A stretch of DNA of 64,000 nt, taken from positions 1,266,834 to 1,330,833 of the forward strand of contig NW_018406762.1 in NCBI RefSeq assembly GCF_002113885.1. Direction: 5' to 3'. The stretch's first letter is position 1. The number at the start of each line of letters is the position of its first letter. Shown in pieces: positions 22,546-63,887 of this stretch. Under the pieces are notes generated by a model that was given only the letters and a program-made list of their open reading frames with translations, ran no database searches and had not been told where the DNA came from. The translations under genes were made by a program, and so were the position numbers. This DNA comes from Mizuhopecten yessoensis (Eukaryota).

Positions 22546-22711
22546 CATGAGACATGATTGTATATTCGTGATACATACATGTCAACTTTCAGAAATTCAA
22601 ATGGGGAAGAAAAGTGTGGGAGCAACATTTTTGACATTCAATATGAATTAAAATAAGAAACAACATATTGGTTCTTGGAAATAGAAAGATGATGTAACGG
22701 GAGATGTTAAA

Positions 22712-23994: not shown

Positions 23995-26399
23995 AAATAG
24001 CATATCACATGGTATAAAACACAGTCAATGCAAAAAGCATATCACATGGTATAAAACACAGTCAATGCAACTAACATATCACATGGTATACAACACAGTC
24101 AATACAACTAACATATCACATGGTATAAAACACCGTCAATGGAAATAGCATATCACATGGTATAAATCACAGTCAATGCAAATAGCATATCACATGGTAT
24201 AAAACATAGTCAACGCAAATAGCATATCACAGGGTATAAAACACAGTCAATGCAAATAATATATTACATGGTATAAAACACAGTCAATGCAAATTGCATA
24301 TCACATGGTATAAAACACAGTCAATGCAACGGACATATCACATGGGATAAAACACAGTCAATGCAAATAGCATATCCCATGGTATAAAACACAGTCAATG
24401 CAAATAACATATCACATGGTATAAAACACAGCCAATGCAAATGACATCTATTTAGTTGAAACACATGTAGATGTAACAACTATTTAGTTGAGTTATAAAA
24501 CACAGTCAATGCAACTAACATATTACATGGTATAAAACAGTCAATGCAACTAACATATCACATGGTATAAAACCCAGTCAATGCAACTAACATATCACAT
24601 GGTATAAAACCCAGTCAATGCAACTAATATATCACATGGTATACAACACAGTCAATGCAACTACCATATCACATGGTATACAACACAGTCAATGCAAATA
24701 GCATATCACACGGTATAAAACATAGTCAACGCAAATAGCATATCACAGGGTATAAAACACAGTCAATGCAAATAGCATATCCCATGGTATAAAACACAGT
24801 CAATGCAAAAAGCATATCGCATGGTATAAAACACAGTCAATGCAACTAGCATATCACATGGTATAAAACACAGTCAAGGCAAATAACATATCACCTGGTA
24901 TACAACACAGTCAATGCAACTAACTTATCACATGGTATAAAACACAGTCAATGGAAATAGCATATCACATGGTATAAATCACAGTCAATGCAAATAGCAT
25001 ATCACATGGTATAAATCACAGTCAATGCAACTAACATATCACATGGCATAAAACACAGTCAATGCAACTAACATATAACATGGTATAAAACACAGTCAAT
25101 GCAACTATCACATGGTATAAAACACAGTCAATGCAACGGACATATCACATGGGATAAAACACAGTCAATGCAAATAGCATATCCCATGGTATAAAACACA
25201 GTCAATGCAAAAAGCATATCGCATGGTATAAAACACAGTCAATGCAACTAATATATCACATGGTATAAAACACAGTCAATGCAACGGACATATCACATGG
25301 GATAAAACACAGTCAATGCAAATAACATATCACATGGTATAAAACACAGCCAATGCAAATGACATCTATTTAGTTGAAACACATGTAGATGTAACAACTA
25401 TTTAGTTGAGTTATAAAACACAGTCAATGCAACTAACATATTACATGGTATAAAACAGTCAATGCAACTAACATATCACATGGCATAAAACACAGTCAAT
25501 GCAACTAACATATCTCATGGTATAAATCACAGGCAATGCAAATAGCATATCACATGGTATAAAACCCAGTCAAGGCAAATAACATATCACATGGTATACA
25601 ACACAGTCAATACAACTAACATATCACATGGTATAAAACACCGTCAATGGAAATAGCATATCACATGGTATAAATCACAGTCAATGCAAATAGCATATCA
25701 CATGGGATAAAACACAGTCAAAGCAAATAGCATATCACATGGTATAAAACAGTCAATGCAACTAACATATCACATGGTATAAAACACACTCAATGCAAAT
25801 AGCATATCACATGGTATAAAACATAGTCAACGCAAATAGCATATCACAGGGTTTAAAACACAGTCAATGCAAATAATATATTACATGGTATAAAACACAG
25901 TCAATGCAACTAACAGATCACATGGTATAAAACACAGTCAATGCAAAAAGCATATCACATGGTATAAACCACAGTCAATGCAAATAGCATATCACATGGG
26001 ATAAAACACAGTCAAAGCAAATAGCATATCACATGGTATAAAACAGTCAATGCAACTAACATATCACATGGTATACAACACAGTCAATGCAAATAGCATA
26101 TCACACGGTATAAAACATAGTCAACGCAAATAGCATATCACAGGGTATAAAACACAGTCAATGCAAATAATATATTACATGGTATAAAACACAGTCAATG
26201 CAAATAACATATCGCATGGTATAAAACACAGTCAATGCAACTATCACATGGTATAAAACACAGTCAATGCAACGGACATATCACATGGGATAAAACACAG
26301 TCAATGCAAATAACATATCACATGGTATAAAACACAGTCAATGCAAATGACATCTATTTAGTTGAAACACATGTAGATGTAACAACTATTTAGTTGAGT
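23995..26399. repeat. 37-bp satellite, ~60 copies, with higher-order structure
   Basis: Unit ATATCACATGGTATAAAACACAGTCAATGCAAATAGC; a ~51-bp non-unit block at 24443, 25361 and 26349. Confidence 0.97.
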
Positions 26400-29327: not shown

Positions 29328-31419
29328 ATGGAACGGCGTACAGGTGGATGGATACTGTTACTGCTGGTGATCTGTTTCACATACAGCCAAGGTAAAATTA
29401 AATACCACATTCATTCATATATTTGGTACTATTTCAGTTTGCTCAATATAACCCCTAGCTCAGAATTGTGGGCAAAAAAATAATTATGATATATGTAAGT
29501 ATGTATAATGAAAATATATCTGTTTTGGATTGACTGTTCAAGTGATTTATTGCAGAAATAACTAGTGAGAAAACTTTCATTATGGGATTTTCAAGACTTT
29601 CTGTACGTTTAAAATCCAAGTTTTTGCAGTAATGTCGCATGAAACCACTAGTGACATAACACAATATACAAAAAATATTCTGGGAATTAGTTAAGTTTGA
29701 TGGACAATTTGTTTTTTCTTACAGCCCGGTTGTGTTTCATCTGTGGATATAACGCACCGACAGACGGGAAAGTGGGCATCAATTGTGTGAACGATACTTC
29801 TAAAGCAAGTGTTCATACCAATTGCTCCAACGACCGGGTGTGTACATTCGATGTCCAGTTCCTCAAAAGTAAGTCCCATATTTTTTTTATTTTTATTTTT
29901 TCGCTATTTTATGCTTTTAAGAAAGTTGAGCCATTCATTGCAATAAATTCACGATATAGTATTTTTGATTTTTTTAATCAATCTTTGTTTGTCTGTGGCC
30001 GTACGAAAATGTCCTTCTGTGGTATGGCTCCGTCCAAATAGGTCTTTCAATTTAGACCTTTAATTAAGGATCTTACACAAGTTGACATTTCTATGAGATT
30101 TATGAAAAAAGTCTGTTGCAACATATAATATCAATGATGTCAAATGCGTTCAGTATCATTCTATCCGCCATCGCCATTTCGTACTAGACCGGTAGTTGTA
30201 ATAAAGAGGAAAAACTCCGAGAACACGGAGACCACAATCAACATCTGTAGCTATTTTCAATCAGGAAGTATGAGGTTGCTTTTATCTCTGATTCATGACA
30301 AAATTGTTAAGAATGTTCAATTTCAACGAGCTATGATTAAAATTAGTGAGCATCATGAATCTTATATGAAATTTAAACGAATGTAAGATACTCTTTATCA
30401 CATAATCAACCTATGTTTCAATTAATCACGAATTATTATCGACTTCTCACTTTAATCCTTTTTGTTTTATGACGTAACAATGCAAATTAAGATTAGTGAC
30501 GTCATGAAATCATGGCATCACGATTAAAACCATACTAATCTACAGCCAGTAACAGCTTCGCTAGGTGTTTTAAAAATTTTATTTTTGAAAATGGCTTTAT
30601 AACCATGATTACAGGGTAATTATGTGTCAAATATATTTTTACTCGTTATTATTTGCGTCATTCAGTAGTTTAAATGACCAAACTGACCAAGCATAACGAA
30701 ACACGTAGTTGATGCATTCTTAACGCATCCGAAGATATTTAAGGATTAACTTGAATATATTTTTATGTTATGGAGGTTTAACACAAAAATACGGAGTGTA
30801 CTCTAAATAAATCGCGAAGCGGTTTATAATGAGAGTCCACTCCGGATTTTTGTGTTATAGCTCCGTAACATAAAACAGTTAATTATTATAATTTAATCTA
30901 CTATACACAATCCATGAGGAAATCCACTTTTATTGATGGACTCCTTTCTCTTAGAAATTGTTACGCCCCTGTATAAGCAAATCAAACGCGGCGTTACAAA
31001 AGGCAACGTCATTTTTTTACGTTATGTAGTGATAACATAATTTTTAAGCCAATTAAAATGCTTGCTACCAGCAAGATTTAATTATTAGTCAATACTAAAT
31101 AACAAAACATAAATGGGAATTTTCTGACACACAATGTCCGTTTTCTGTAGGTTCCCTCGAGTTAGTGTCAGTGACCCGGAACTGTCTTCCGTCATCCGCC
31201 CCTCGTTCCAACACGTGCTTAGACGACTGGACACACCGACAGTGTACATTTTCATGTAATACGGACTTGTGTAACAACTTGACGGCCCAGGAGCTCAACA
31301 ATCGATACGGCGACAGGGGAGCGAACTCTGCACATTCCTCGGTCGAAATTATCTCCCTTGTTTCCAGTTCTCTCGTGGTGTGCGCTGTTTGGATTGTAAA
31401 GACACGGATTAGTCTCTAA
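29328..31419 (+). CDS. Ly6/uPAR (three-finger, quiver/sleepless-like) secreted, probably GPI-anchored protein, copy 1, 158 aa, intact
   Basis: Exons 29328-29391 (signal peptide MERRTGGWILLLLVICFTYSQ), 29725-29868 and 31151-31419; both introns phase 1 GT-AG. 10 Cys from LCFIC to CTFSCNTDLCN; hydrophobic C-terminal tail. Confidence 0.9.
30736..31101. mobile_element. Hairpin-containing insertion in Ly6 copy 1 intron 2, absent from copy 2
   Basis: Palindrome ~30762-30875 (ttatgttatggag..acaaaaatacggagtg / cactccggatttttgtg..ctccgtaacataa); the flanks are contiguous at ~55168 in copy 2. Confidence 0.65.
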
Positions 31420-32659
31420 TTGGTGTAAGACATATTACGGAACCTTGTACATCCGTAATCCGGAAATCAAGAAAGAACGTTGTCTAGATATTGATATTAG
31501 ATACATTATACACACTTCGAGGAAAGGGAGACAAACAGAAAATATGTTTCTCTTTCCAGTTACTACACAATATCCCACGTAAGGTTCTACAATTAATAAA
31601 CTATTAATCATACATTATTACAGCTCTTAATCACCAAGTTAAAACAATTGTTAGGATTTGAATAATTACTATTTTCCAATCAGTTTTATGTTAATAAGTT
31701 TAATCTTATCTTTTTCAAAACATGGATTTTTTGAGGTATCTTATGTATGTTATACATGTGTCCTACACTGGACATTCACGTGAGATTAATAGCATATTTC
31801 GCCCCTTTTGGTTTAATAAAGGGAATCTCTTATCATGGCGAGGTGTATCCACGTCTACCCTAATGTGATGTTCATTTACTATTTGTCCTGTTGGGTCGTA
31901 GATAAGGAATTTAGTACCAAGAAAGAAGATTCCTAAGTTGTCAAACACGACGCTCGCCAAGTGTTTGGCAACTGCGGTATCTTAAAAACTATTAACTCCT
32001 TCCCGAAGGTGGAGATTCTCCCGTTTTATCCAAAAAGAATTGGATTATTCTTTTTCTCTTATCCTGTTTGCTCTGTCATCTGTTCAATGTTGACATTGAC
32101 GTTAATCAAGCGAATGTTGTTTGATCAATGATAATTATATGCACTGCATCCTCTGTCTATCGTAAACTTTTCTATAAGGATTGCCTCCCTCCATTGATAT
32201 TCAACACATGTTTCTTATGCGTGTTTGGAATGTGTCCTTAATTCTTTTATTCTTCTTATGTTTTGTCAATCATTTTGTGTACGTCTAACACGTGTCATAA
32301 ATATTTGCGCACGGTTGAAAAGCGTTATAAATTCTCTTAAACTCCTGAAATGTGTCATCAATACTTGAATTCCGCTCAAATTTATCCTCAGCGTTTGTTT
32401 ATTCTGTTAATGTTCTCAATTCAATTATAACATCAATTAATAGATTTAGTTTGAATTACCAATCTTACATTATGTTTTAGTGTGAATCTCTCATGGATAT
32501 GAAATGGAAGTCAGTTCAGACAGCATATGCCGTTAAATAGGTTGTGATGTGAAGTCACAAAGAGAAAACATATATTCCGTTTGGGCTAGGTTCTTAGTTC
32601 TCGGTGCGTTTGACGCTGGATTCACGTTAACTATAACATCTGAATGACTCACGAACACT

Positions 32660-35972: not shown

Positions 35973-37539
35973 TTACAGTCCCATCACGTGTACGGTACCG
36001 TCTACACACCCAACCCACACGTTACCACACGTGTCCACACCCACCGCTTTAGATCCACTCACTCCATGTTTCTGGTCCAGGAGACACGTGGCCTGTGTAC
36101 AATCTCTCTGTAGGACATACACCTGGCTGTTCTTGTAGTCTGGTACAAACAGTCTGTCGTACTTGTCACGTGACAGATTAAAGAGGTTCATACTACCAAC
36201 CTTTTGACCGTTGTTGAGTTCACCAGTCCATTTATATTTGGTTGTACCAGATTTGTCTGTTATGATTGATACATTACTAACGTCCGACACTGCAATGTCT
36301 CCTGACGACAAACATGTAATAAACCCCACAACCATTCCACACGTCACCTTCCTCACAATCGTACCTGTCTGATTCAGTACCACTATGTCTGGTGTACCTG
36401 TACTAACAAACACCTCGTTCCTCTTGTTGATGCTGATGTCATGTGGTTCATGTGGCTTGATGTCAGCAAATGTTGTCACTTGTTGTTTGTGTAGTGATAG
36501 TTTATATACAAATGTACTATCATTAAAACGGCTCATAAGTATGTCTGTTGTCCCGACCATGGTGATCATGTCCGGACAGAAGACCAGTTTTACTGTCTCT
36601 ATGACCACACCATACCTGACTGTCGTCGACTGGACATATACCGAATATTCGATTTTGTTGTGAAACAGTAAACTCAGAGAGACGTTGAACGTGTTTATTG
36701 TTGATGTCTGTCTTCTCGTACTGGTTCTCGTGGTGTAATTTACCTAACATTTTTGTCAACGGGACTCGGTTGATACTTCCGGTAACAAAGCTTGGTTGTT
36801 TTGGTGAAATATGTTTCATCTTAACGTCATACAGGGGCAGAGTTTTCCTCAATGACGTTTCAAATATGGATACACTAGATGTATCCGTCACTTCCGCCTT
36901 TTCAAGCAGACGCGTCAGCTCTTCGATATTTTTCTCCGATCGTTGAATATCTTTCTTGTACAGCAGTGATTCCTCTTTTTCTAAAGATGATAACTCGGCC
37001 AGCACTGCTTCCGCGATATAATCTACTTCTGCCTTTAGCTTAGTCCTCTGTGAGTTTACCTCTTTCCTCGTTGTATCAATGTTGTCTTTAAACGTTTTGT
37101 TCACGCGATGTCGCTCGGATGTCTCGTTCTTGAAATGTGCTATTTTATCAGCTAACGTTGTCATATGTTCCTTAAAATGTTCCTTTTTGACAAACAGTTC
37201 GTCTTCAAAAAGATTCCAGTTGTGTTGTTTATGATTTTTAGATAAACATATCGAACAAATCAACTCGTTGCAGTCCGAGCAGAACATATCACACAGTTTA
37301 CCGAGATGTAGTTTACATACCTCTGATAGAGGCTTGTCGCCCTGACGGGTAGCCTTCCCTATCGACACGACGTCATCGTTTTTGGTTTTCCTTCCGCGTG
37401 TATGGATTTCCTTACACCGGTCACATAAATTCTCCCGACAATCGTTACAATACCATCGTACCCCGTCTTCACTGTCACACAAATCACACGTGTAGGTAAC
37501 GGGTTCCTGGGCACGTCTTACGGATCTGTTACTTGCCAT
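35973..37539 (-). pseudogene. TRIM-like B-box/B-box/coiled-coil/NHL gene (TRIM-A, copy 1), frameshifted
   Basis: Two overlapping ORFs (338 aa and 211 aa) together match the 60645-62264 paralog. A 47-bp deletion at ~36609/36610 removes LSIHEYEGLVLINSEA and shifts the frame. Confidence 0.88.
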
Positions 37540-43619: not shown

Positions 43620-44752
43620 GTTGTACCACGAGGTTCCTCATGTTGCAGTCCAAGACTGGGACGGTACCGTCGCGACAATCGACCCACACGTGTCCACACC
43701 CACTCTTTTAGGGGTTACCGATCCATGTCTCTGGTAAAGGACATACACCTGATTGTTCCTCAGGTCGCGTACACAGACTCTGTCGTACTTGTCACACTGT
43801 ATACTTTGACAGTTCTCTGAACATGGAGAAACAAGTGAACGCTATTGCCAAATCCTGTTACTACCAGATCAGGAACATCGGCTGTATTCGGCAGTTTCTA
43901 ACTGCAGATGCATGCAAGATTTTGGTGCATTCACTTGTTACCTCTCGGTTGGATTATCGTAACGCCCTGCTCTGTGGTATATCTGACAAACTAACTAGTC
44001 GTCTGCAGAGGGTTCAGAACACTGCAGCACGGCTAGTTACTCGTACTCGAAAGAGAGAGCACATCACACCTGCGCTTTATTCGTTGCACTGGTTACCTGT
44101 ACGATACAGGTCGCAGTACAAAATTCTGGTATACACATACAAGGCACTGAATGGAACAGCTCCTCAGTACCTACAGGAACTTGTTACCCTGTATCAGCCG
44201 TCAAGATCACTGCGGTCGGAGTCAGAATCTTTGTTGTGTGTCCCAAAATCTCGTACTGTGACCTACGGAAACAGATGCTTTGGGAGGGTTTCGGCTACGT
44301 TGTGGAATAGCTTACCATCTGCTATTAGGAAGTCGAATACCCTGGCCAAGTTCAAGAGGGACATAAAAACTCACCTCTTCACGTCTGCATTTTAGAATCT
44401 TTGCAAAGACGTCATGTAAATACCACCCTTTTATTTGTTCAATTATGTGCACATTGCTTGTTAAATATATGAAAGTGATTGCAAGCCTTTGTTGTTTGTT
44501 TTCACAATTATAACCATTACTGTTATCCATATGTTGTAAAGCGCCTTAGAGTAATTTTACAAATTATATAGGGCGCTATATAAATGTTGTATATTATAAT
44601 TATTATTATATATTATGGCTACTCCTACTACGAACCTTTTGGCGATTGTTGAGTTCACCAGTCGATTTAAATTTAGTTGTACTTAATCTGTGTACTATGA
44701 TTGATATATCATACCATGTCGACATTGCAACCTCTCATGACAATAAACATGC
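43620..44752 (-). pseudogene. Degenerate TRIM/NHL 3' remnant split by a LINE
   Basis: 43620-43795 matches the TRIM 3' end (GVDT..WV.C.DGTV, DKYDR); 44625-44752 matches the next upstream part (GELNN..). Multiple indels. Confidence 0.8.
43796..44616 (+). mobile_element. 5'-truncated L2/CR1-group LINE (C-terminal region of the RT ORF)
   Basis: ORF 43823-44395 with LVHSLVTSRLDY.NALL..LQRVQNTAARLV..HITPAL.SLHWLPV..YKALNGTAPQYL; 3' stem-loop gtaaagcgcc..ggcgctatataaat and (TTA)n tail. Confidence 0.92.
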
Positions 44753-45809
44753 AGCAAAATACACATTTGTTTTAAACGAAAAGTTAGAATAGGTACCATT
44801 TATTTGTATTGTAAAAGTAAAATGCCTCATCAAACAAAAGAAATGTGCTCCATTACTTTTGTAATCAAACAATAAACAACGACAATACGTTATATGTTTA
44901 GCAAGTGCCCCATTTAAAACATATTTACATCGCATATTTACATGTAAATATCAATTAGCATGATAGTTTACACGCGTATTTAAGCTAAACCAAGGAAATG
45001 ATTAAATGTAACCTCAGTAAGTATATTTAAAAGACAACAAATGTCGGAATACAGTAAGCCGGGACTCAATTACAGTTATCTGTACACAAATCATATGTGG
45101 TAATATCGTTATTTACTACAAAGTTTGATCGACAATCAAGTGTAGACTCGTCATATTATATTTATATCTCGCATGTAAAATCGCGTTCTACATGTACCTT
45201 TAACAGTTTATATTTCACAACTGTGTATTCTGGCTTCCCTTAAAAAAGATCGGTATTACTATGGTGCTGTAGGGATATCTCTGTCAATCTGTATAATAGA
45301 GTACAAAAACAACTTTATCATGTCACCTTAAACACTGATCTTATTACAAAACTTTCCAATTTTGGTCGCAGCTATGGATAATCTGTAGGTCTAAACCAGG
45401 GAAGCATGGGGCTCCTTAAAGGGGTAAAAACATATCCGACTATTTGGTTAACCGGCTAACAGTTGACAACCCAAACTAAAAACAACGTCATTTTCGTCCA
45501 TATGTCCATCACGTCTGTCCGCTTGTCTGTATTGTCTGTTTTTTGAAAGATCGCCTTGATATGTGATTTAGTACGACCCTGCTTGATGGCATTTAAAATC
45601 TCTACATAAAGTCGGATATACATATTTCATGGGAGTCTGAATTACGCAAAATATATGTAATGAACACATCAACATCTTATTCATTTCTCATCAAGAATTT
45701 AAGAGCACCAAACTGATTGTAACTCTGATTTGACTTTTTAAAAACCCATTTTATTGTTACAGAGTATACAGCAAAGACTGGACATAAGTTATCGTAACCT
45801 ACGAAACGT

Positions 45810-48800
45810 CCCTCTTATTCAAGTTAAAAAGCCGGGTTTGATACCAGTCATTCCCATCTTATTCCAGTTACACATCCTGGTTTGATACCAGTCATTCCCC
45901 TCTTATTCCAGTTACACAACCGGGTTTGATACCAGTCATTCCCTTCTTATTCAAGTTACACAACCGGGTTTGATACCAGTTATTCTCCTCGTAATCCAGT
46001 TACACAAACGGGTTTGATACCAGTCATTCCCCTCTTATTCCAGTTACACAACCGGGTTTGATATCAGTCATTCCCCTCTTATTCCAGTTACACAACCGGG
46101 TTTGATACCTGTCATTCCCAACCTATTCCAGTTACACAACCGGGTTTGATACGAGTCATTCTTCTCTTATTCCAGTTACACAACCGGGTTTGATACCAGT
46201 CATTCCCCTCTTATTCCAGTTACACAAACGGGTTTGATACCAGTCATTCCCTTCTCATTCCAGTTATACAACCAGGTTTAATACCAGTCATTCTCCTTTT
46301 ATTCAAGTTACACAGGTTTGCTACCTGTCATTCCCCTCTTATTCCAGTTACACAACCAGGTTTGATACCAGTCATTCCCTTCTTATTCCAGTTATTCAAA
46401 CGGGTTTGATACCAGTCTGTATCCTCTTGTTCAAGTTACACAGCCGGGTTTGATACTAATCCTCCTCCTCTTATTCCAGTTACACAACCAGATTTGATAC
46501 CAGTCATTCCCTTCTTATTCCAGTTATACAACCGGGTTTGATACTTGTCATTTCCCTCTTATTCCAGTTACACAAACGGGTTTGATACCAGTCATTCCCC
46601 TCTTATTCCAGTTACACAACCGGGTTTGATATCAGTCATTCCCCTCTTATTCCTGTTTCACAACCGGGTTTGATACCTGTCATTCCCCACCTATTCCAGT
46701 TACACAACCGGGTTTGATACGAGTCATTCTCCTCTTATTCCAGTTACACAACCGGGTTTGATACCAGTCATTCCCTTCTTATTCCAGTTACACAAACGTG
46801 TTTGATACCAGTCATTCCCTTCTCATTCCAGTTATACAACTAGGTTTAATACCAGTCATTCTCCTTTTATTCAAGTTACACAACCGGGTTTGCTACCTGT
46901 CATTACCCTTTTATTCCAGTTACACAACCAGGTTTGATACCAGTCATTCCCTTCTTATTCCAGTTATTCCACCGGGTTTGATACCAGTCTGTATCCTTTT
47001 ATTCAAGTTACACAGCCGGGTTTGATACCAGTCATTCTCCACCTATTCCAGTTATACAACCGGGTTTAATACTAGTCATTCTCCTCTTATTCCAGTTACA
47101 CAACCAGGTTTGATACCAGTCATTCCCTTCTTATTCCAGTTATACAACCGGGTTTGATACTTGTCATTCCCCTCTTATTCCAGTTACACAACCAGGTTTG
47201 ATACCAGTAATTCCCAACCTATTCCAGTTATACAACCGGGTTTGATACTAGTCATTCTCCTCTTATTCCAGTTACACATCCAGGTTTGATACCAGTCTGT
47301 ATCCTCTTATTCCAGTTACACAGCCGGGTTTGCTACCAGTCATTCCCCTCTTATTCCAGTTACATAACCAGGTTTTATACCAGTCATTCTCTTCTTATTC
47401 CAGTCATACAACCGGGTTTGATACCAGTCTGTATCCTCTTATTCAAGTTACACAGCCGGCTTTGCTTCCAGTCATTCCCCTCTTATTCCAGTTACATAAC
47501 CAGGTTTTATACCAGTCATTCCCTTCTTATTCCAGTCATACAACCGGGTTTGATACCAGTCTGTATCCTCTTATTCCAGTTACACAGCCGGGTTTGCTAC
47601 CAGTCATTCCCCTCTTATTTCAGTTACACAACAGGTTTAATACCAGTAATTCCCTTCTTATTCCAGTTATACAACCGGGTTTGATACCAGTCATTCCCTT
47701 CTTATTCCAGTTATACAGCCGGGTTTGATACTTGTCATTCCCCTCTTATTCCAGTTACACAACCAGGTTTGATACCAGTCATTCCCCACCTATGCCAGTT
47801 TTCCAACCTGGTTTGATACTAGTCATTCCCCTCTTATTCTAGTTACACAACCAGGTTTGGTACCTGTCATTCCCCACCTATTCCAGTTATACAACCGGGT
47901 TTGATACCAGTCATTCCCCTACTATTCCAGTTACACAACCGGGTTTGATACCAATCATTCCTCTCTTATTTCAGTTACATAACCAGGTTTTATACCAGTC
48001 ATTCCCTTCTTATTCCAGTCATACAACCGGGTTTGATACCAGTCTGTATCCTCTTATTCCAGTTACACAGCCGGGTTTGCTACCAGTCATTCCCCTCTTA
48101 TTTCAGTTACACAACAGGTTTGATACCAGTAATTCCCTTCTTATTCCAGTTATACAACCGGGTTTGATACCAGTCATTCCCTTCTTATTCCAGTTATACA
48201 GCCGGGTTTGATACTTGTCATTCCCCTCTTATTCCAGTTACACAACCAGGTTTGATACCAGTCATTCCCCACCTATGCCAGTTTTCCAACCTGGTTTGAT
48301 ACTAGTCATTCCCCTCTTATTCTAGTTACACAACCAGGTTTGGTACCTGTCATTCCCCACCTATTCCAGTTATACAACCGGGTTTGATACCAGTCATTCC
48401 CCTACTATTCCAGTTACACAACCGGGTTTGATACCAATCATTCCTCTCTTATTTCAGTTACACAACCGGGTTTGATACTAGTCATTCTCCTCTTATTCAA
48501 ATTACACAAACTGGTTTGATACCTGTCATTCCCTTTTTATTCCAGTTACACAACCGGGTTTGATACCAGTCATTCCCTTCTTATTCCAGTTACACAACCA
48601 GGTTTGATACTAGTCATTATCCTCTTATTCCAGTTACACAGCCGGGTTTGATACCTGTCATTTCCTTCTTATTCCAGTTACACAACCGGGTTAGATACCA
48701 GTCATTCCCTTCTTATTCCAGTTACACAACCGGGTTTGATACCAGTCATTTCCCTATTATTCCAGATATACAACCGGGTTTGATACCAGTCATTGCCCCC

Positions 48801-49190
48801 TTATTTCAGTTACACAAACGGGTTTGATACCAGTAATTTCCCTCTTTATTCCAGTTATACAACCAGGTTTGACACCAGTCATTCCCCTCTTATTCCAGGT
48901 ACACAACCGGGTTTGATACCTGTCATTCCCAACCTATTCCAGGTACACAACCGGGTTTGATACCAGTAATTTCCCTCTTTATTCCAGTTTTACAACCAGG
49001 TTTGATACCAGTCATTCCCCTCTTATTCCAGGTACACAACCGGGTTTGATACCAGCAATTTCCCTCTTTATTCCAGTTATACAACCAGGTTTGATACCAG
49101 TCATTCCCCTCTTATTCCAGTTACACAACCGGATTTGATACTAGTCATTCCTCTCTTATTCCAGTTACAAATCCGGGTTTGATACCAGAC
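45810..49190. repeat. 44-bp satellite, ~76 copies
   Basis: Unit CCGGGTTTGATACCAGTCATTCCCCTCTTATTCCAGTTACACAA. Confidence 0.97.
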
Positions 49191-50132
49191 AAGTAGACCA
49201 GTCTGATCCTTTTTGCGTACATTTAAATATGTATGCGGCACCGTAACGCTAAAGTTGATTGGCTTTGAAATGTCTCTTCTCTGTCATCTTCTAAGGACAA
49301 GTATCAGCCTAGCGATTGTTATTTGTTACCTGAGAGCAATCAAACAGCTACATTTGTGCCTTAGATTTTATCATGACATTTTCCAGGGCTGATAAACGGT
49401 ACCACTGCATTAGTTACACTCCTAAATAATCTTCCACCAAGTTTGTCTGACTTGAAGTAATATCCGTTATATATAGAAGATGAAAAAAGCAGATGGATTT
49501 TGAACAGAGATAAAAAAAAATATGTACAAATCTAAAACCATTTAATAGCCTGGATGTGCATGTTTGTATTGTTTGGAAACGAACTGTTCGAGTAACAAAA
49601 CTTACTGGAGATATTTTATATAGTATGTTCTTAAATATTGACAAAGTGACTGTCTTTCTCTAACTACTTCTTCATATGTGCATATAATTAATTACATGTC
49701 GCAAAAATACTTTAAACAAATATTTGATAATTCTGACAATTATAACAAGACAACTTAACTTGATGGTACTCGATCTTTACCTTAAGATGACATGAACAAT
49801 TTCAAAATAAATCCTGATAAAGCAAGTAAATAATAACAATACCTAATCCCACAAATAAATAAAACAAAACCCTCAGTGCAGCTCACTAATGAATTAGTTG
49901 ATCAGTTCAATGATAAGGACCTGTCAGTTCAAAAACCGAATTACCTTTAAATGATTTTTGGTACAGATGTCATTAACACCGATTGATCAATTTCTTGAAT
50001 GTCTTTATAATATGAATTGAAATTCGAACGTAATTTCATGCACCAGACATTGGCGAATTGTTTGTGATGATATTTACATAAAGTAATACTGTACTACGAG
50101 GTCAAGTATACATCATTTACTGTATCCTCATG

Positions 50133-51746
50133 TTACAGTTTGATCACGTGTACCTTACCGTTCACGCACCCGATCCATACGTTCCCACACGTGTCCACAC
50201 CCACCGCTGTAGGTTCATTCACCTTAAGGAATGTCCAATTAATGAGACACGTGGCTTGTGTACTATCTCCCGGTAGGACATAAACCTGATTGTTGTAGGA
50301 GTCTGGTACAAACAGTCTGTCGTACTTGTCACGTGACATCTTAAACAGGTTCCTAATAATTGGCTTTGAACTGCTGTTGTTTTCACCAGACCATTTGTAT
50401 TTGGTTGTACCAAAACTGTCTGTTATGATTGATATATCAAAATGGTCTGACACTGCAATGTTTCCTGACGACAAACATGTAATACACTTCCCATCCGTTC
50501 CACACGGCACCTTCCTCACAATCGTACCTGAATGATTCAGAACCACTATGACTGGTGTACCTGTACTAACAAACACCTCGTCCTTCTCGTTGATGCTGAT
50601 GTCATATGCTTTATGTGGTCTGATGTCAGCAAATGTTGTCAATAGTTTGTTGTTTAGTGATATTTTATATACAAATGTACTAGGTGGATTACTGGTCATA
50701 AGTATGTCTGTTGTTCCGACACTGGTGGTTCGGTACGGACAGAAGTCCAGTTTAACTGTCTCTTTGACCACACCCTCCCTGTTGACCAGTACAAGACCCC
50801 GGTTATGGTCTATTGATAACCACGCGTGCCTGTCGTCAACAGGAGAGATGCTTGATATTTTCTTTAGCTGAGTAACAGTAAACCTAGAAAGACGTTGAAC
50901 GTTATTACTGTCGATTTTTATCTTCTCGTACTCGTGCAATTCCCCTAACATTTTCGTCAACAGAACGTGGTCGATACTTCCGGTAACAAAGCTTGGTTGT
51001 TTCGGTAGCCCGAATTTCACCTCAACGTCATACAGGGGCAAAGTTTTCCTCAATGACATTTCTGTTTGAAAAATAAATACACTAGATGTATCAATCACTT
51101 CCGCCTTTTCAAGCAGACACGTCAGCTCTTCGACATTTTTCTCTAAATTTTTAATATCGTTCTTGTACAGCAGTGATTCCTCTTTTTCTAAAGATGCTAA
51201 ATCGGTCAGCACTGCTTCCGCGATAGAATCTACTTCTGCCTTTAACTTAGTCCTCTGAGAGTTTACCTCTTTCCTCGTTGTATCAATGTTGTCTTTGAAC
51301 GTTTTGTTCACGCGTTGTCGCTCTGACGTCACGTTCTTGAAATGTGCTATTTTATCAGCTATCGTTGTCTTATGTTTCTTAAAATGTTCCTTTCTGACAG
51401 ACAGTTCGTCTTCCAAAAGTTTCCAGTTGTGGTGTTTATGATTTTTAGATAAACATATTAAACAAAGCAACGCATCGCAATCCGAGCAGAAAAGATCATA
51501 CAGTTTACCGGGATGGATTTTACATACCTGTGGTACAGGCTTGTCGCCCTGACGGTTAGCCTCTCCTATCGGTACGACGTCGTCGTTTTGAGTTTTCTTT
51601 CCTCGTTGATGGAATTCCTTACACCGGTCACATAAATTCTCCTGACAATGGTTGCAATACCATCTTACCCCGTCTTCACTGTCAAATAAAGCACAAGTGA
51701 AGGTTACGGGCTCCTGAACAATGCGTACGGGTCTGTTTCCTGCCAT
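50133..51746 (-). CDS. Intronless RING-less TRIM-like protein (B-box x2, coiled coil, NHL-type beta-propeller), TRIM-B, 537 aa
   Basis: Open ORF from the ATG at 51746 (MAGNRP); C/H B-box motifs, helical coiled coil, NHL-like repeats (PTAVGVDTCGNVWIG). First B-box reads CALF instead of CxxC. Confidence 0.88.
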   Translation of the reverse strand: MAGNRPVRIVQEPVTFTCALFDSEDGVRWYCNHCQENLCDRCKEFHQRGKKTQNDDVVPIGEANRQGDKPVPQVCKIHPGKLYDLFCSDCDALLCLICLSKNHKHHNWKLLEDELSVRKEHFKKHKTTIADKIAHFKNVTSERQRVNKTFKDNIDTTRKEVNSQRTKLKAEVDSIAEAVLTDLASLEKEESLLYKNDIKNLEKNVEELTCLLEKAEVIDTSSVFIFQTEMSLRKTLPLYDVEVKFGLPKQPSFVTGSIDHVLLTKMLGELHEYEKIKIDSNNVQRLSRFTVTQLKKISSISPVDDRHAWLSIDHNRGLVLVNREGVVKETVKLDFCPYRTTSVGTTDILMTSNPPSTFVYKISLNNKLLTTFADIRPHKAYDISINEKDEVFVSTGTPVIVVLNHSGTIVRKVPCGTDGKCITCLSSGNIAVSDHFDISIITDSFGTTKYKWSGENNSSSKPIIRNLFKMSRDKYDRLFVPDSYNNQVYVLPGDSTQATCLINWTFLKVNEPTAVGVDTCGNVWIGCVNGKVHVIKL

Positions 51747-53120
51747 AGTATACGTTACTTGATTAAACACGTTAATGCTTTACCTGCAGAGAAATACAAT
51801 TCTTTCTGCATTAATGTCAGTACAACTTTAACTATACACTTCCTTGTCACGGATGTATCACGTGATAAGTCCGATAACGATATAGACATATTATGTCCTT
51901 GACTCTTGGCGTGATACCAAAAATTAAAGGACTTGCTCTCGTGAAAGGTCAAAATGTTCGACTGACTTGATTGTTTTGAGACATACGTTATTTTAAAGAG
52001 AATAGGAGAAAATTTCAAATATGAAGGAAATGATATATATTTCTGCCAGTTCTTTTGCTAATGTCGTTCAAACATACACATTTTACGTAATAAGTGATTC
52101 CAAATGGTGTTATCCGAAGTATTTGACTGTTTTCACAATTGATGAAATATTTTTTCTTCTAGATTTTGTAAGTTAAAAGTCCTCAAATTATATTTTGATC
52201 TCAGAGAAGCAGTTTGGGTTTCCCCTACCCCGTATTTTTTGAATAAAATAAAACCTTCAATGTTTTCATTGTTTTTTTTTCAGTTTTAATAATTGATATA
52301 AAAAAGTATTCACTGAATTGAAAGAAAATGCGATTCCCTTCCTAAAAGGTTTCCTTATTAGTTGATCTTGAAATATTGCCTAGAAAACATTTAATGAGAT
52401 AAAAATATCAACAGCTACAACAAAATGCATTGGAATTAAAATGATTGAATGATATATTTTTATTATATGAATTATCTCCCTTGTAATTAATGCACAAATT
52501 ATGCACATATCTTTTTTCCTATTTCACCATTGATTAATAAATAACCTAGAGTTTAAGTCCGATAAACTATGTAATGGTCAGCGTTTTGATAGAGCAGGTG
52601 ACGACATAGATATTTTTTTCCAAAAAATAAAATAATTATAGAAACTTGATATATCACTTTCAACTGTTTCCGAGATAAACTTAAAATGAAAACAAAAAAA
52701 ATCATTACTGCCACATTTAGGAACAAGTTGGAAAAATAACATTTATTTTCATTGTAGGAACTGCCTCCTTTGTATTTGTAGGGAAGTTGGAACATTAGGG
52801 TGTCACCGCGATTTATATAAGGAATATGATTCACTATCTCAACCACACATAGCGTCATTAAAGCCGCATGGTCAGTAATATATGTGTCACATTATCCAAC
52901 TTTTATCATTCTGATTAAAAACTGACGTCAGAGCAACGCGTGAAAAATTATCAATGTAAGATTCATTAAAAAAGACCACTTTTTTCGTAGTTATTGTACA
53001 AACAAGGAAATTGACATGATATATATACAAAACGTCGATATATACCTATGCAACTTTGACTTTCTATTTACGTAGTAAAACATGTAGCAATCTGACGGCT
53101 TGCTTAATTTTAAAATTTAA

Positions 53121-55483
53121 ATGGAGCGGCGTACAGGTGGATGGATACTGTTACCGCTGGTGATCTGTTTAACATACAGCCAAGGTAAAATTAGATACCA
53201 CATTCATTCATATACTTGGTACTATTTCAGTTTGCTCAATATAAACCCTAGCTCAGAATTATGGAAAAAATTATTGTGATATATATAAGTATGTGTAATG
53301 AAAATATATCGGTTTTGGCTTGACTGTCTAAATGGTAAATCCAAATGTGGAAACAATTGACTTTATTGCAGAAATACCTAGTGAGAAAACTTTCAATCTG
53401 TACGTTTAAAATCCAAGTTTTTGCAGTAAACACAATATACAAAACATATTCTGGGAATTAGTTAAATTTGATGGACAATTTATTTTTCTTACAGCCCGGC
53501 TATGTTTCATCTGTGGATATAACGCACCTACAGACGGAAAAATGGGCATCAATTGTGTGGACGATACGTCTAAGGTAGCAGAATACAGTAGAAATGGCCC
53601 GACTCTGATAAACAAGGCACATGTCGAGGAAATGTAAACACAGCGGATTTACCCTACACAACACATGTATACATGTATATATATTTGTAAACTGCATTAC
53701 ATTTACAACACATATAAAGTACTGAGAAGTGTATAAACCTCTTTTTTCTATGTATGTCACTTGTGTGAAAACAATGGTTACCCTATCAAAAATTACCAAA
53801 AAATGCCAAAAAATGCCAAAAATTGCTATTTTTAACCCAAAATGTGACCCCCGCAACTAGTATTTTTTTTCTAAGCTCTGTCTGAAATTAAAGATTACCT
53901 ACCTGGTTGCAGAATTATCTGGGTCCCAGTAAAGTTGTAAAACTATTGTTTTTGCAATTTTGCGTCGTGTGCTGTTGTCAAAATTTTACTTCCTGTAAAG
54001 CTAGCTTTTCATGTGTACGCAACCTTTCGGATTATGGCCAAAATTTTTATTCTCGAACCAAAAAAATCTTCTCTCTTTTTTACAAATGTGAAGCTCACAT
54101 ATCCCACTTCATCATGCTTATACCAATTTTAGTACAGTTTTATTTTTATATTTCTTTTACATATCATTATACAGGTGTTAGCCATTTAACAAAAATATCA
54201 CCCATGGCCACAACCCTCTACTGTACACTGCTACCTACAGCAAGTGTCCATACCAATTGCTCCAACGACCGGGTGTGTACATTCGATGTCCAGCTCCTCA
54301 AAAGTAAGTCCCATATTTTTTTTTTATATCTATTTTGCTATTTTATGCTTTAAAGAAAGTTGAGTCATTCATTGAAATAAATTCACGATACAGTATTTTT
54401 GTCTTTTTTAAATCAGTCTTTTTTTGTTTGTGGCCGTACGAAAATGTCCTTCTGTGGTCTGGTTCCATCCAAATAGGTCTTTCTGTGGTTTTAATTAAGG
54501 ATCTTACACAAGTTGACATTTCTATGAGATTTATGAAAAAAGTCTGTAGCAACATATAATATCAATGAACTATCAAATGCGTTCAGTATCATTCTATTCG
54601 CCATCGTTATTTCGTACTAACCGATAGTTGTAATAAAGAGGAAAAATTCCGAGAACACGGAGACCACAATCAACATCAATAGCCAATTTCAATCAGAATC
54701 TCTGATTCATGACAACAGTGTTTTAAAAGAGTTTCCAAATTAAACGAAATCTAGCGAGCTATAATTAGAATAAGTGAGCATCATGAATCTTATATGAAAA
54801 TTAAACGAATATAAGATACTCTTTATCACTTAATCTACATATGTTTCAATTAATCACGAATTTGGTTTACCTGACAAATGAAATAATAATTATCGACATT
54901 TCACTTTAATCCTTTTTGTTTTATGACGTAACAATGCAAATTAAGATTAGTGACGTCATGAAGTCATGGCATCACGATTAAAACTATACAAATCTACAGC
55001 CAGTAACAGCTTCGCTAGGTGCTATAACCATGATGACAGGATATTTTTGCGTCAAATATATGTTTACTCGTTATTATTTGCGTCATTCAGTGGTTTAAAA
55101 GACCACACTGACCAAGCATAACGAAACCTGCACATAGTTGATGCATTCAAAATCGCATCAGAAGCAAAATATAAATGAAGATAATTTCTGACACACAATG
55201 TCCGTTTTCTGTAGGTTCACTCGAGTTTGTGTCAGTGACCCGGAACTGTCTTCCATCCTCCGCCCCTCGTTCCAACACGTGCTTAGACGACTGGACACAC
55301 CGACAGTGTACATTTTCATGTAATACGTACTTGTGTAACAGCTTGACGGCCCAGGAACTCAACAATCGATACGGCGACAGGGGAGCGAACTCTGCACATT
55401 CCTCGGTCGAAATTATCTCCCTTGTTTCCAGTTCTCTCGTGGTGTGCACTGTTTGGATTGTAAAGACACGGATTAGTCTCTAA
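53121..55483 (+). pseudogene. Ly6/uPAR gene copy 2, exon 2 interrupted by a TIR element
   Basis: Exons 53121-53184, 53495-53573 + 54238-54303 (split), and 55215-55483. Read-through into the insertion hits a stop at ~53635. L>P in the signal peptide and D>Y in CNTDLCN. Confidence 0.8.
53574..54235. mobile_element. ~660-bp non-autonomous DNA transposon in Ly6 copy 2 exon 2
   Basis: TIRs GGTAGCAGAATACAGTAGA / TCTACTGTACACTGCTACC; flanks TAA / TAC; empty site TCTAAAGCA in copy 1. Confidence 0.9.
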
Positions 55484-59985: not shown

Positions 59986-60644
59986 AAATGACTATTTAGA
60001 GTTTCATTTTTAATTTTTTTAATTGTGTTTTCTGCATGAATAGAAAATCATAAATAATGTGCAAATATAATACCATTTAAAAGTATGTAATTGGATGTTT
60101 TTATTTTTTGGAAACGAACTTTTTGAGTTACAAAACTTAATGCAGATAATTTCATGCAACACACTCTTAAATATTGATAGTGTTTTTCTGTCTGATTCTC
60201 TCTCTCTCCCCCTTCTCTTTAACTACCTCTTAATGTGTGCATATGATTAATTACGTGGCGCAAAAATGTCTTCAAGAAATATTTCATCATTGCACAAATT
60301 GTAATAATATATTTGAACTTGATGGTACTGGAAATTTTCCTTAAGATGACATGAAATATTTCAAAATAAATCCTTGAAAACTAATTAAATAAATAAAACG
60401 AAACCGTCAGTGCAGTTCACTAGTTAATTCGTTGATCAGTTCAATGATCAGGCATTGTCGGTTCAAAAACCATATGACTTTAAAATGTCATAAACACCAA
60501 TTGATCAATTGTTCAAATGTCTCTACAAAATGAATCGATATTTGAGAGTGTTTATTAGACATTGATGAATTGTTTGTGATGATATTTACATAATGTAGTA
60601 TTGTACGACGAGGTCAAGTGTTTATCATGTACTCTTTCCTCATG

Positions 60645-62264
60645 TTACAGTCTCATGACGTGTACGGTACCGTCCTCACACCCGATCCACACGTTCCCGC
60701 ACGTGTCCACACCCACCGCTATAGGGCTGATCACTCCATGTTTCTGATCCAGGAGACACGTGGCCTGTGTACTATCTCTAGGTAGGACATACACCTGGTT
60801 GTTAGTGTAGTCCGGTACAAATAGTCTGTCGTACTTGTCACGTGACATATTACGGATGTCCCTACTACCAATCTGCTGGCCGTTGTTGAGTTCACCAGAC
60901 CATTTATATTTGGTTGTACCGGATCTGTCTGTTATGATTGATACATTATCATAGTCCGACACTGCAATGTCTCCTGACGACAAACATGTTATACACCACG
61001 CCTTCATTCCACACGTCACCTTCCTCACAATCGTACCTGTCTGATTCAGTACCACTATGTCTGCTGTGTTTGTATTAACAAACACCTCGTCCCTCTCCCC
61101 GATGCTGATGTCGTATGCTTTATGTGGTCTAATGTCAGCAAATGTTGTCACTTGTTTGTTGTGTAGTGATAGTTTATATACAAATGTACTAAATGGATCA
61201 ATGGTCATAAGTATGTCTTTTGTCCCGACAATGTTGGTTTTGTGCGGACAGAAGTCCAGTTTAACTGTCTCTTTGGCCACAGCCTCACTGTTGATCAGTA
61301 CCAGACCCTCGTATTCATGTATTGATAACCACGCGTGACTATCGTCGACTGGACTTATATCCAATATTTGATTTTGCTGAGAAACAGTAAACTTAGAGAG
61401 ACGTTGAACGTGTTTACTGTCGATGTCTGTCTTCTCGTACTGGTCCCCGTGGTGTAATTCACCTAACATTTTCGTCAACAGGATGCGGTTGATATTTCCG
61501 AGAACAAAGCTTGGTTGTTTTGGTGAAACATGTTTCATCTTAAAGTCATACAGGGGCAGAGTTTCCCTCAATGACATTTCCGTTTCAAATATGGATACAC
61601 TAGATGTATCCGTCATTTCCGCCTGTTCAAGCAGACGCGTCAGCTCTTCGACATTTTTCTCCGATCGTTGAATATCTTTCTTGTACAGCAGTGATTCCTC
61701 TTTTTCCAAAGATGCTAACTCGGCTAGCACTGCTTCCGCGATATAATCTACTTCTGCCTTTAACTTAGTCCTCTGTGAGTTTACCTCTTTCCTCGTTGTA
61801 TCAATGTTGTCTTTGAACGTTTTGTTCACGCAATGTCGCTTGGACGTCTCGGCCTTGAAATTTGCTATTTTATCAGCTAACGTTGTCATATGTTCCTTAA
61901 AATGTTCCTTTTTAACAGACAGTTCGTCTTCAAAAGGTTTCCAGTTGTGCTGTTTATGAGTTTTAGATAAACATATCGAACAAATCAATTCGTTGCAGTC
62001 TGAGCAGAACATATCACACAGTTTACCGGGATGTAGTTTACATACCTCTGGCACAGGCTTGTCACCCTTACGGTTAGCCTTCCCTATCGACACGACGTCA
62101 TCGTTTTTAGTTTTTCTTCCGCGTGTATGGGTTTCCTTACACCGGTCACATAAATTCTCCTGACAATCGTTACAGTACCATCTTACCCCGTCTTCACTGT
62201 CACACAAAGCACATGTGTAAGTAACGGGTTCTTGGGCACGCCGTACGGATCTGTTACTTGCCAT
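60645..62264 (-). CDS. Intronless RING-less TRIM-like protein (B-box x2, coiled coil, NHL-type beta-propeller), TRIM-A copy 2, 539 aa, intact
   Basis: ATG at 62264 (MASNRS); CALC..CNDC..CDRC..H and CKLH..CSDC..CSIC..HKQH B-boxes; coiled coil; NHL-like repeats to the stop. Confidence 0.92.
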   Translation of the reverse strand: MASNRSVRRAQEPVTYTCALCDSEDGVRWYCNDCQENLCDRCKETHTRGRKTKNDDVVSIGKANRKGDKPVPEVCKLHPGKLCDMFCSDCNELICSICLSKTHKQHNWKPFEDELSVKKEHFKEHMTTLADKIANFKAETSKRHCVNKTFKDNIDTTRKEVNSQRTKLKAEVDYIAEAVLAELASLEKEESLLYKKDIQRSEKNVEELTRLLEQAEMTDTSSVSIFETEMSLRETLPLYDFKMKHVSPKQPSFVLGNINRILLTKMLGELHHGDQYEKTDIDSKHVQRLSKFTVSQQNQILDISPVDDSHAWLSIHEYEGLVLINSEAVAKETVKLDFCPHKTNIVGTKDILMTIDPFSTFVYKLSLHNKQVTTFADIRPHKAYDISIGERDEVFVNTNTADIVVLNQTGTIVRKVTCGMKAWCITCLSSGDIAVSDYDNVSIITDRSGTTKYKWSGELNNGQQIGSRDIRNMSRDKYDRLFVPDYTNNQVYVLPRDSTQATCLLDQKHGVISPIAVGVDTCGNVWIGCEDGTVHVMRL

Positions 62265-63887
62265 GGTGTTGGTACTTAACACACAAACAGTGAAATACTA
62301 CCATTTGTTTCTGGGTCGGTACAACTATAACTATACACTTCCTTGTTACGGTTATACCACGTGACTTGACCGACAGACAGTATAATGTCCCGGACTCCTG
62401 GCGCTAGGCCAAAATAATCTAACTTAAAGGCAGATCTTGCTATCATACGTTACCATCATTACATGTGTGTATTAGACATACATTTAAGTTGTGATTTGTT
62501 CTTGAACTGTGTCCCTTCGACCAAACATTTAGACTTTCAAAAGAAAACGACTAGTGCTGAATACATATGATGAAGAAGCTGTATGAGGCAATAATCTTTT
62601 TGGCAAATTTTATGCATTACTTAATGTTAAAGGTGTATCACATTTATTTGTGTTACGTTCATCTCATGTATATTACATATAACGAGCTGGTCGCCGCCAA
62701 ACTAGCCCGGTAACAGTACAGAAGTGGCACGAAATTCCCGTTAACGTCATTTGACGTCACAAAACAGTTTATGCACAGGGGTTCGTCACAAATGTCTAAA
62801 ATTAACAAATGATTTACTGTTGAATCAAAGCACATCAAGGCACAACTAATTAATTATCTTAGTTTGATGTGACTCATAGCAGTGTAGCCAATGTTTATTT
62901 CAGACATATGTCACAACCCCTGTACAATGATACAGATGCTTGTTAATTTTAACTTTCTGCCCCACTTTTCACTTAAGATCCACGATATCACACAGTTGTG
63001 ATGACTTATGTTCATCTACTAAGTTTCGGAAAGCGTAAATACTACTGCATTATTATTTATACTATATATACCCTGTTTGAACAAAGAACATTTCTAACCC
63101 CCTAAAATAAAGAATCGTTACTGTAAAGTTGACACTTGAGTGTTTTGAATTGTTTTCAACCCCACTACAACATCTGTTTGTTATACATATGTATATTCGA
63201 GTTTTCGTGTAATGACTGTTACTTGTGACTCAATAATATTTGTGTATTTTACTTTTTTAATATACATAATGTCAATATGAAAATTGTTGATGGGTTTTGT
63301 ATATTTCGACCCATGATAAATATGACTCGACTTTATAAAGAAAACGTACCGCCTCGGTCGGAGAAGCACACTCACAAAACAGTGTGGTAGCTGTGGACGC
63401 TTACTCTGTCAGAGATGACAGGGGACTACACATATGATCCCTTCCTCCATGATGCCAGGAGCGGATAGTCAGGATACTTGATGTTTTTCATTATGCTATA
63501 AAACGTTATTCATATTACAATAAGTATAAAACAATTAATTGAAACTCATATTTTACTATCTTTTTGGACCTGATGTAAGCGCGCAGGGGTCTCAATTTGG
63601 GAGGAAACTAGAGTGCTTTTATTAAAAAAGAAGAATGTATAATCCACTGCACCCCCGACCACCCGATGTTTGCATGCTTTAAGGAGTTAGGGCGAACGTC
63701 ATATACAAACATGATATGTGATCACCATGGTATGCACACCAATACCTCTGTTTCAATTTTGAAAATAGGAAGGATGTCATAATCAGTAGATACATAGCCC
63801 TAGCTATTAACATTATTGGTACAGGTAAATAGGAAGGATGTAATAGTCAGTAGTTACATAGCCCTACCTATTGATGTTATTGGTTCA

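Follow-up and report, generated by a model that had tools for sequence, protein, structure and literature searches.

Here we describe a tandemly expanded gene family of the scallop Mizuhopecten yessoensis in which about 20 positions of a C-terminal β-propeller evolve at a ratio of nonsynonymous to synonymous substitution rates (dN/dS, ω) well above 1, and in which the propeller scaffold, made up of the strands and the A-B and C-D loops, is under purifying selection. Three copies of one gene, which we call A1, B and A2, lie on the minus strand of a 64-kb stretch of DNA (hereafter the window; scaffold C3435:1266834-1330833 of a 988-Mb assembly in 82,659 contigs). An original prediction, made from the letters of the window alone, had pointed to short hypervariable patches in the propellers of these copies and had proposed diversifying selection on a recognition surface; all 21 of the peptide strings it quoted are found in the A1, A2 and B translations, and a DNA alignment of the three copies resolves the short-patch differences into multi-nucleotide clusters amid near-identical stretches. 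We think it likely that this tandem RING-less B-box/NHL family, with its diversified propeller face, is a germline-encoded intracellular recognition repertoire.

We extracted 34 intact paralogs from the genome and built a codon alignment from them, in which, by eye, the strands are invariant and short columns of near-random residues lie between. Site models, which the original prediction had suggested applying to such an alignment, were fitted with our own GY94/F3x4 likelihood on IQ-TREE topologies, in which branch lengths could change only by one common scale factor, and found a positively selected class. A single ratio (M0) put ω at 0.75 in the propeller and at 0.41 in the N-terminal half. 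The comparison of M1a with M2a gave a likelihood-ratio test (LRT) statistic of 408.9 for the propeller (p ~1e-89), with 9.5% of codons in a class at ω 4.7 and 20 codons at a posterior above 0.95; the N-terminal half of the same genes, serving as a control, gave 7.5 and one site. Because recombination can inflate site-model tests, the analysis was repeated on thirds of the domain, each with its own tree, which recovered the same sites (LRT 73, 159 and 88.5). Taken apart, two clades of 13 and 15 genes gave LRTs of 158 and 181, and 11 of the 19 sites found in each are common to both (hypergeometric p = 4e-10). Sites selected in either clade were then evaluated in the other one with their own synonymous rate, which returned a pooled ω of 2.41 (p = 1.3e-4) and, in the reverse direction, 1.78 (p = 0.035), so the proposal that dN/dS exceeds 1 at the patches was borne out both within and across clades. 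The same excess appeared without any tree when differences were counted in 13 independent sister pairs, the hot spots being taken from the other clade: the proportion of nonsynonymous sites that differ (pN) was 0.286 at hot spots, compared with a synonymous proportion (pS) of 0.120 for the rest of the propeller (odds ratio 2.9, p = 5e-20), and dN/dS in these pairs was 0.58 for the scaffold and 0.42 for the N-terminal half.

The fold on which these sites were placed was predicted with AlphaFold2 for the C-terminal 261 residues of A2, using an alignment of 35 scallop relatives (mean predicted local distance difference test score, pLDDT, 92.6; predicted template modelling score, pTM, 0.90). The model has 24 canonical strands forming six four-stranded blades, with the N-terminal strand closing blade 6. 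The highest-ranking Foldseek matches were the Pizza6 designs, themselves derived from NHL, and NHL domains from TRIM2 (TMq 0.82), TRIM3, Brat, Thin and PknD, with TMq ranging from 0.72 to 0.82 across this set, and the Brat-RNA complex 4zlr was among the fold matches. A profile of the family, searched against PDB sequences, matched Pizza6 (2.7e-12), Brat (3.5e-8), PknD (2.3e-5), Thin (1.2e-3) and TRIM71 (2.9e-3). On the strength of the fold model and both kinds of match, the C-terminal domain is modelled as a divergent NHL-type propeller, which in A2 occupies 60648..61403 (model residues 10-261). Pfam assigned nothing to the C-terminal 250 residues, its NHL repeat PF01436 had no match at E <= 0.1 in A2, B or A1, and precomputed Pfam lists of related database proteins contain B-box families only.

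In four-stranded antiparallel propeller blades, successive loops alternate between the two faces, so that all D-A and B-C loops lie on one face and all A-B and C-D loops on the other. The selected residues (posterior > 0.95) of the model are 21, 23, 78-80, 104, 106, 121, 145, 146, 160, 161, 164, 191, 193, 209, 235 and 252; residues 63, 208 and 234 have M2a posteriors of 0.83-0.94. Of the 18 mapped sites, 13 belong to D-A or B-C loops proper and five sit at the ends of adjoining strands (assigned with DSSP), no more than two residues in; the 52 A-B and C-D loop residues include none (Fisher p = 3.6e-7). The variable residues are thus clustered rather than scattered over the fold, every one being within two residues of a D-A or B-C loop. 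At least one selected site is present in 11 of the 12 loops of this face, the exception being the blade-1 B-C loop, which is variable but not significant; ω was 0.50 for the opposite-face loops and 0.64 for the strands. By the WD40/NHL convention the D-A/B-C face is the 'top' face, where Brat and LIN-41 bind RNA, and the variable face would correspond to the surface with which Brat, LIN-41 and TRIM71 bind RNA or protein. Residues at the hot spots are enriched in Tyr (3.5x), Trp (2.4x), Phe (2.3x), and Asn and Arg (both 1.8x), with Val, Met, Gly and Ile under-represented; Arg and Lys make up 13.2% and Asp and Glu 10.4%, without net positive bias.

A hypervariable patch had been expected once per blade. 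Recurrence holds for all six blades, but each blade has two variable loops, the D-A loop running into strand A and the B-C loop, and the patches listed originally cover seven of the 12 loops, leaving out blades 1 and 3 as well as the final B-C loop. In A2 (minus strand of the window throughout), the first hot spot lies at the blade-1 D-A loop and strand A entry (61362..61370; residues 21 and 23, M2a posterior 1.00, selected in both clades). Blade 2 contributes CPHKTNIV at the strand A entry (61227..61250; residue 63, posterior 0.94) and TIDPFST in the B-C loop (61185..61205; residues 78-80), where residue 80 takes 15 amino-acid types among the 34 paralogs (p = 0.004 in the per-site test described below). 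Blade 3 has PHKAY in its D-A loop (61113..61127; residues 104 and 106) and NTNTA in its B-C loop (61062..61076; residue 121), and blade 4 has GMKAWC (60993..61010; residues 145 and 146) and SDYDNVS (60939..60959; residues 160, 161 and 164) in the corresponding loops; a second clade carries a 6-residue insertion in the blade-4 B-C loop. In blade 5 the D-A patch is SRDIRN (60849..60866; residues 191 and 193) and the B-C patch DYTNN (60798..60812; residues 208 and 209). Blade 6 closes the series with VISPI in the D-A loop (60720..60734; residues 234 and 235) and CEDG in the B-C loop (60669..60680; residue 252, with 13 amino-acid types).

Several points weigh against reading these results as diversification of a binding face. 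The site models are home-written, with the restricted branch lengths given above, and are not those of PAML or HyPhy. Per-site fixed effects likelihood (FEL), run on a 24x24 rate grid with each site given its own synonymous rate, was far more conservative: at p < 0.05 the propeller had only 11 positive sites and the N-terminal half 4 (negative sites, 47 and 66). All top-loop codons pooled gave an ω of 1.11, which is not significant; we place selection on one to three positions per loop, not on entire loops. Crude pairwise dN/dS within hot-spot codons was 1.17, again not significant, because path-averaged synonymous differences are high at these codons; we therefore relied on maximum-likelihood (ML) estimates and on comparison with neutral divergence. 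The 'top face' was assigned by loop parity and convention instead of measured coordinates, and expression, discussed below, is inferred only from contig positions, as no run is recorded as RNA. Finally, synonymous change is itself raised at hot spots (pS 0.252 vs 0.120 in the sister pairs; ML α 1.8-2.8x background), and gene conversion or recombination within the array, of which one pair of paralogs gives an example, can inflate site-model tests.

That pair is L003 (G000:C3435:385659-389411) and L012 (429442-433194). Their 0.6 kb of 5′ flank is near-identical and the first 938 nt of the open reading frame (ORF) hold two differences; beyond this point 17 of 130 nt differ in blades 2-3, divergence continues downstream and the 3′ flanks are divergent, a mosaic that points to gene conversion or unequal exchange between members of the array. 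The raised hot-spot synonymous rate may stem from successive replacements via multi-step codon paths, from multi-nucleotide mutations, or from short-segment (micro-)conversion between paralogs. If conversion had lowered the apparent neutral divergence of the scaffold, or mutation were locally biased, ω above 1 could be spurious, and the loop segments would then represent old lineages, micro-conversion cassettes or mutational hot spots; the mosaic, the roughly twofold synonymous divergence at hot-spot codons and the star-like framework identities within the array (0.90-0.925) all fit such an artefact. However, ML estimates that use the hot spots' own synonymous rate still give ω of 2.4 and 1.8, and the signal holds with a separate tree for each third of the domain. 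Neither conversion tracts nor mutation bias has a reason to choose 11 of the 12 loops of one face while leaving all 12 of the opposite face untouched, and homogenisation that spared exactly the binding-face loops would itself require selection for diversity. We therefore regard an artefact of this kind as very improbable. With the framework at these identities and hot-spot codons already ~45-55% different, we read the pattern as one that would reflect concerted evolution of the scaffold together with selection for diversity at the binding face.

The A1 and A2 copies allow a direct comparison with neutral divergence. As had been predicted, they share one duplication, both lying inside a duplicated block (~29.3-41.3 kb vs 53.1-63.6 kb). 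The near-identity of the duplicates, predicted from their Ly6 exons, stands for some stretches only, such as 31159-31500 with the Ly6/uPAR-like last exon (96-98%), and not for the block overall, whose median identity is 90%. This Ly6/uPAR-like terminal exon lies at ~31165-31419 (+), with its copy near 55229-55480, and its CN-type cysteine motif, which ends in ...SCNTDLCN, is followed by a hydrophobic tail. Non-coding divergence (K) between the A1 and A2 blocks is 0.065-0.127 in five of six blocks and 0.23 in a short 5′ block; synonymous divergence (dS) of the two genes is 0.14-0.17 (0.14 in non-hot-spot codons, where dN/dS is 0.78). At 14 hot-spot codons defined in the unrelated clade, A1 and A2 differ at 56% of nonsynonymous sites (pN 0.556), which puts patch divergence at no less than four times the neutral level and upholds the earlier observation that these codons are heavily changed despite the shared duplication.

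The A1 copy has a broken frame. It consists of two overlapping ORFs in different frames (35973-37539, minus strand) and, as alignment and BLAST breakpoints show, lacks 47 nt relative to A2 and B (A2 61282-61335 vs A1 36610-36616), which shifts the frame just before the propeller, and lacks a further 6 nt in the linker. A1 is therefore probably a pseudogene, and the frameshift may add some neutral change to the comparison. Relaxed constraint would go further and hold that the patches are unconstrained surface loops and A1 a decaying pseudogene, in keeping with the frameshift, with the A1/A2 dN/dS of 0.78 outside hot spots and with the pooled top-loop ω that does not differ from 1. Neutral sites, however, cannot outpace the neutral rate, and the hot-spot pN of A1/A2 exceeds both dS and the mostly 0.065-0.127 of flanking K. 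The 13 intact-gene pairs show the same excess (0.286 vs 0.120), M2a is preferred over the nearly neutral M1a (LRT 409), and the pattern is independent of A1, since it is also present among the 34 intact paralogs. Neutral decay of A1 thus fails as an explanation, and we assign relaxed constraint a negligible probability.

The rest of the protein bears on what the variable face might serve. A2 is an intact ORF of 545 amino acids (aa; 60645-62282, minus strand, as for all A2 features), with a single coding exon at 60645..62264 that runs from the likeliest start, a Met at 62264, to a stop at 60645-60647 and encodes 539 aa. Pfam family PF00643 matches two stretches (E = 6e-13), giving two B-boxes, and PF22586 was matched as well. 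The first is a B-box1-type, ANCHR-like zinc finger (62106..62213; PF22586 and PF00643) in the place usually taken by the RING of a TRIM protein, and the second a B-box2 zinc finger (61935..62045; PF00643, E = 5.7e-13, residues 80-116 of the 545-aa ORF). No RING family was found at E <= 0.1 in the Pfam scan, in which the first zinc finger fits the B-box models PF22586 and PF00643. Between B-box2 and the propeller lies a linker of ~170 residues (61431..61934) that, from this position, is probably a coiled coil; the linker of paralog B gives only weak Pfam matches, to long helical families. Direct reading of the N-terminus (MASNRSVRRAQEP...) reveals no hydrophobic leader, and the protein is accordingly read as cytosolic. 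It is a RING-less B-box/NHL protein with a probable coiled coil, distinct from a canonical TRIM, and the missing RING implies that such proteins would not themselves be ubiquitin ligases. B shares this architecture (intact ORF 50133-51770, coding 50133..51746, Met at 51746, minus strand; locus L022 in our genome list).

The family is tandemly expanded and has relatives in other scallops. Searching the genome in six frames, with the A2 propeller as query, returned 115 matches at E <= 1e-10, a lower bound on family size, and dozens of these keep intact frames of ~540-580 aa. Many copies lie in two arrays on scaffold C3435 (0.2-0.47 Mb and 1.30-1.44 Mb), with more arrays on other scaffolds. All 48 matches of a word-based protein search were from scallops (Mizuhopecten, Ylistrum, Pecten and Argopecten); the closest database proteins to A2 are annotated from Mizuhopecten yessoensis, among them LOC110452761, which is 95% identical. 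Two pairs of copies, L001/L002 (G000:C3435:1327481 vs 1397306) and L004/L005 (1333814 vs 1403795), are separated by the same offset of ~69.8-70.0 kb; L001 and L002 are 95% identical, and L004/L005 is a pair of equal score. This ~70-kb repeat is a segmental duplication of recent date or else a haplotype left uncollapsed in the assembly. The amino-acid differences between L001 and L002 include a cluster in the blade-6 D-A loop.

Variation confined to one face is what one would expect if the germline encoded a set of intracellular recognition proteins, and from the fold, the lack of a signal peptide, the pattern of selection and the size of the family we infer a variable intracellular receptor. 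Under this proposal every paralog would display its own binding surface on a constant scaffold, and dimerisation and higher-order assembly would fall to the B-box/coiled-coil part. The family might then act as a germline-encoded repertoire for intracellular recognition or restriction, most plausibly against viruses or other fast-evolving intracellular targets. Its diversity would arise by tandem duplication and point substitution under diversifying selection, with gene conversion keeping the scaffold similar among copies. Diversifying selection could also be real and serve something other than pathogen recognition, the proteins being RNA-binding repressors that track transposon or endogenous transcripts, or players in reproductive or self/non-self conflict. 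The known NHL top faces of Brat, LIN-41 and TRIM71 bind RNA motifs, 4zlr appears in the fold matches, and proteins without a RING are not ubiquitin ligases themselves, all of which would suit such roles; the hot spots, however, are aromatic-rich without net positive charge, a composition that fits protein contacts as well as RNA and so does not discriminate. We hold a function of this sort to be unlikely. A more specific version of the recognition proposal, in which each of more than 100 paralogs would bind a different viral or transposon RNA or protein through its NHL face and B-box/coiled-coil lattices would restrict the target, appears to us decidedly doubtful.

Among known systems, the nearest is by function the multigene TRIMs of teleosts and primate TRIM5alpha, by fold the TRIM-NHL proteins, and by evolutionary mode the fungal WD40 NLRs. 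Like the scallop family, the teleost TRIMs (finTRIM/ftr, btr, trim35/hltr) and TRIM5alpha are lineage-specific expansions of B-box proteins with a coiled coil (in scallops a probable one), and they combine a C-terminal ligand-binding domain that has hypervariable loops with a conserved scaffold and diversifying selection among paralogs (PMC3137616). They carry a B30.2/PRY-SPRY β-sandwich and a RING E3, whereas the scallop family has an NHL-like propeller and a B-box1 instead of the RING; measured against finTRIM- and TRIM5-type families, lineage-specific tandem expansion and loop-confined selection are present and B30.2/PRY-SPRY is absent. TRIM-NHL proteins (Brat, LIN-41/TRIM71, TRIM2, TRIM3 and Thin/TRIM32) share the B-box, the C-terminal six-bladed NHL propeller and probably the coiled coil; in these proteins the D-A/B-C face binds RNA or protein. 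They are the best structural matches of the scallop propeller (TMq 0.77-0.82) and detectable by profile, but these developmental regulators are conserved and mostly single-copy, and carry a RING (except Brat) and often a filamin domain, whereas the scallop family is fast-evolving, has more than 100 copies and aligns structurally at 12-14% identity.

The closest likeness in evolutionary mode is to the fungal NLR-like HNWD proteins (HET-E, HET-D and HET-R), in which, as here, selection acts on few positions of a propeller face with concerted evolution of the scaffold. These proteins mediate intracellular non-self recognition and show diversifying selection at few positions per repeat on the WD40 interaction face, together with concerted evolution of the scaffold (PMC4986451). 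Theirs is a WD40 domain in a NACHT/HET architecture that diversifies by shuffling near-identical repeats inside a gene; a single scallop protein has six dissimilar blades, and it is between paralogs that sequences vary. Another invertebrate β-propeller, coral tachylectin-2, is reported to be highly diverse in amino acids and under positive selection; it is a secreted lectin of five blades and a putative immunity gene, unlike the intracellular B-box family of scallops (PMC2880987). B30.2-diversified vertebrate TRIMs and hypervariable WD40 propeller faces in fungal NLRs are therefore known already; our full-text literature searches returned no report of hypervariable NHL propellers, of this scallop family or of NHL-propeller diversification in animals, and the candidate papers PMC5549309 and PMC9334734 contained nothing that bears on it.

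If the more specific version of the recognition proposal is true, the repertoire would constitute a previously undescribed class of animal intracellular immune receptor, beside those based on leucine-rich repeats (LRR), B30.2 and WD40. To our knowledge, bivalves lack adaptive immunity. Herpes-like viruses cause mass mortalities in bivalves, and an intracellular repertoire of more than 100 binders whose variable face is defined would supply concrete candidates for resistance loci. The natural scaffold is close to the designed Pizza propellers and accepts almost any residue at ~20 positions, which could aid binder engineering. Eleven hot-spot loops with coordinates make the recognition hypothesis directly testable.

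Contigs of four small public-run assemblies, from four studies, span 60125-62323 on the window, with nothing to either side. Several end in unrelated sequence at 62271-62277, beside an AG ten bases upstream of the ATG, which marks a probable splice acceptor (62275..62276, minus strand, reading ...gttaag|tacc..., with the exon that contains the coding region beginning at 62274). The ~520 nt at 60125..60644, within the limits of contig coverage, are the probable 3′ untranslated region (UTR). From these contig boundaries A2 is probably transcribed, with one or more upstream 5′ UTR exons, one coding exon and a 3′ UTR. One contig joins 62272 to 62380, and contig ends over 62271-62414 suggest alternative 5′ UTR exons at the acceptor 62275/62274. 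Some contigs bear variants of the 95%-identical copy L002, so that reads of two copies, or of alleles, are mixed in them.

Elsewhere in the window, a 190-aa ORF at 43823-44395 (+) resembles, by eye only, the C-terminal part of a non-LTR (non-long terminal repeat) retrotransposon reverse transcriptase. Six tandem-repeat arrays lie at 3956-5220, 9277-9643, 13283-16535, 21964-22559, 23994-26399 and 45809-49192; their units, estimated from BLAST offsets, are ~27-68 nt long and 85-93% alike, and three of the six arrays exceed 2 kb.

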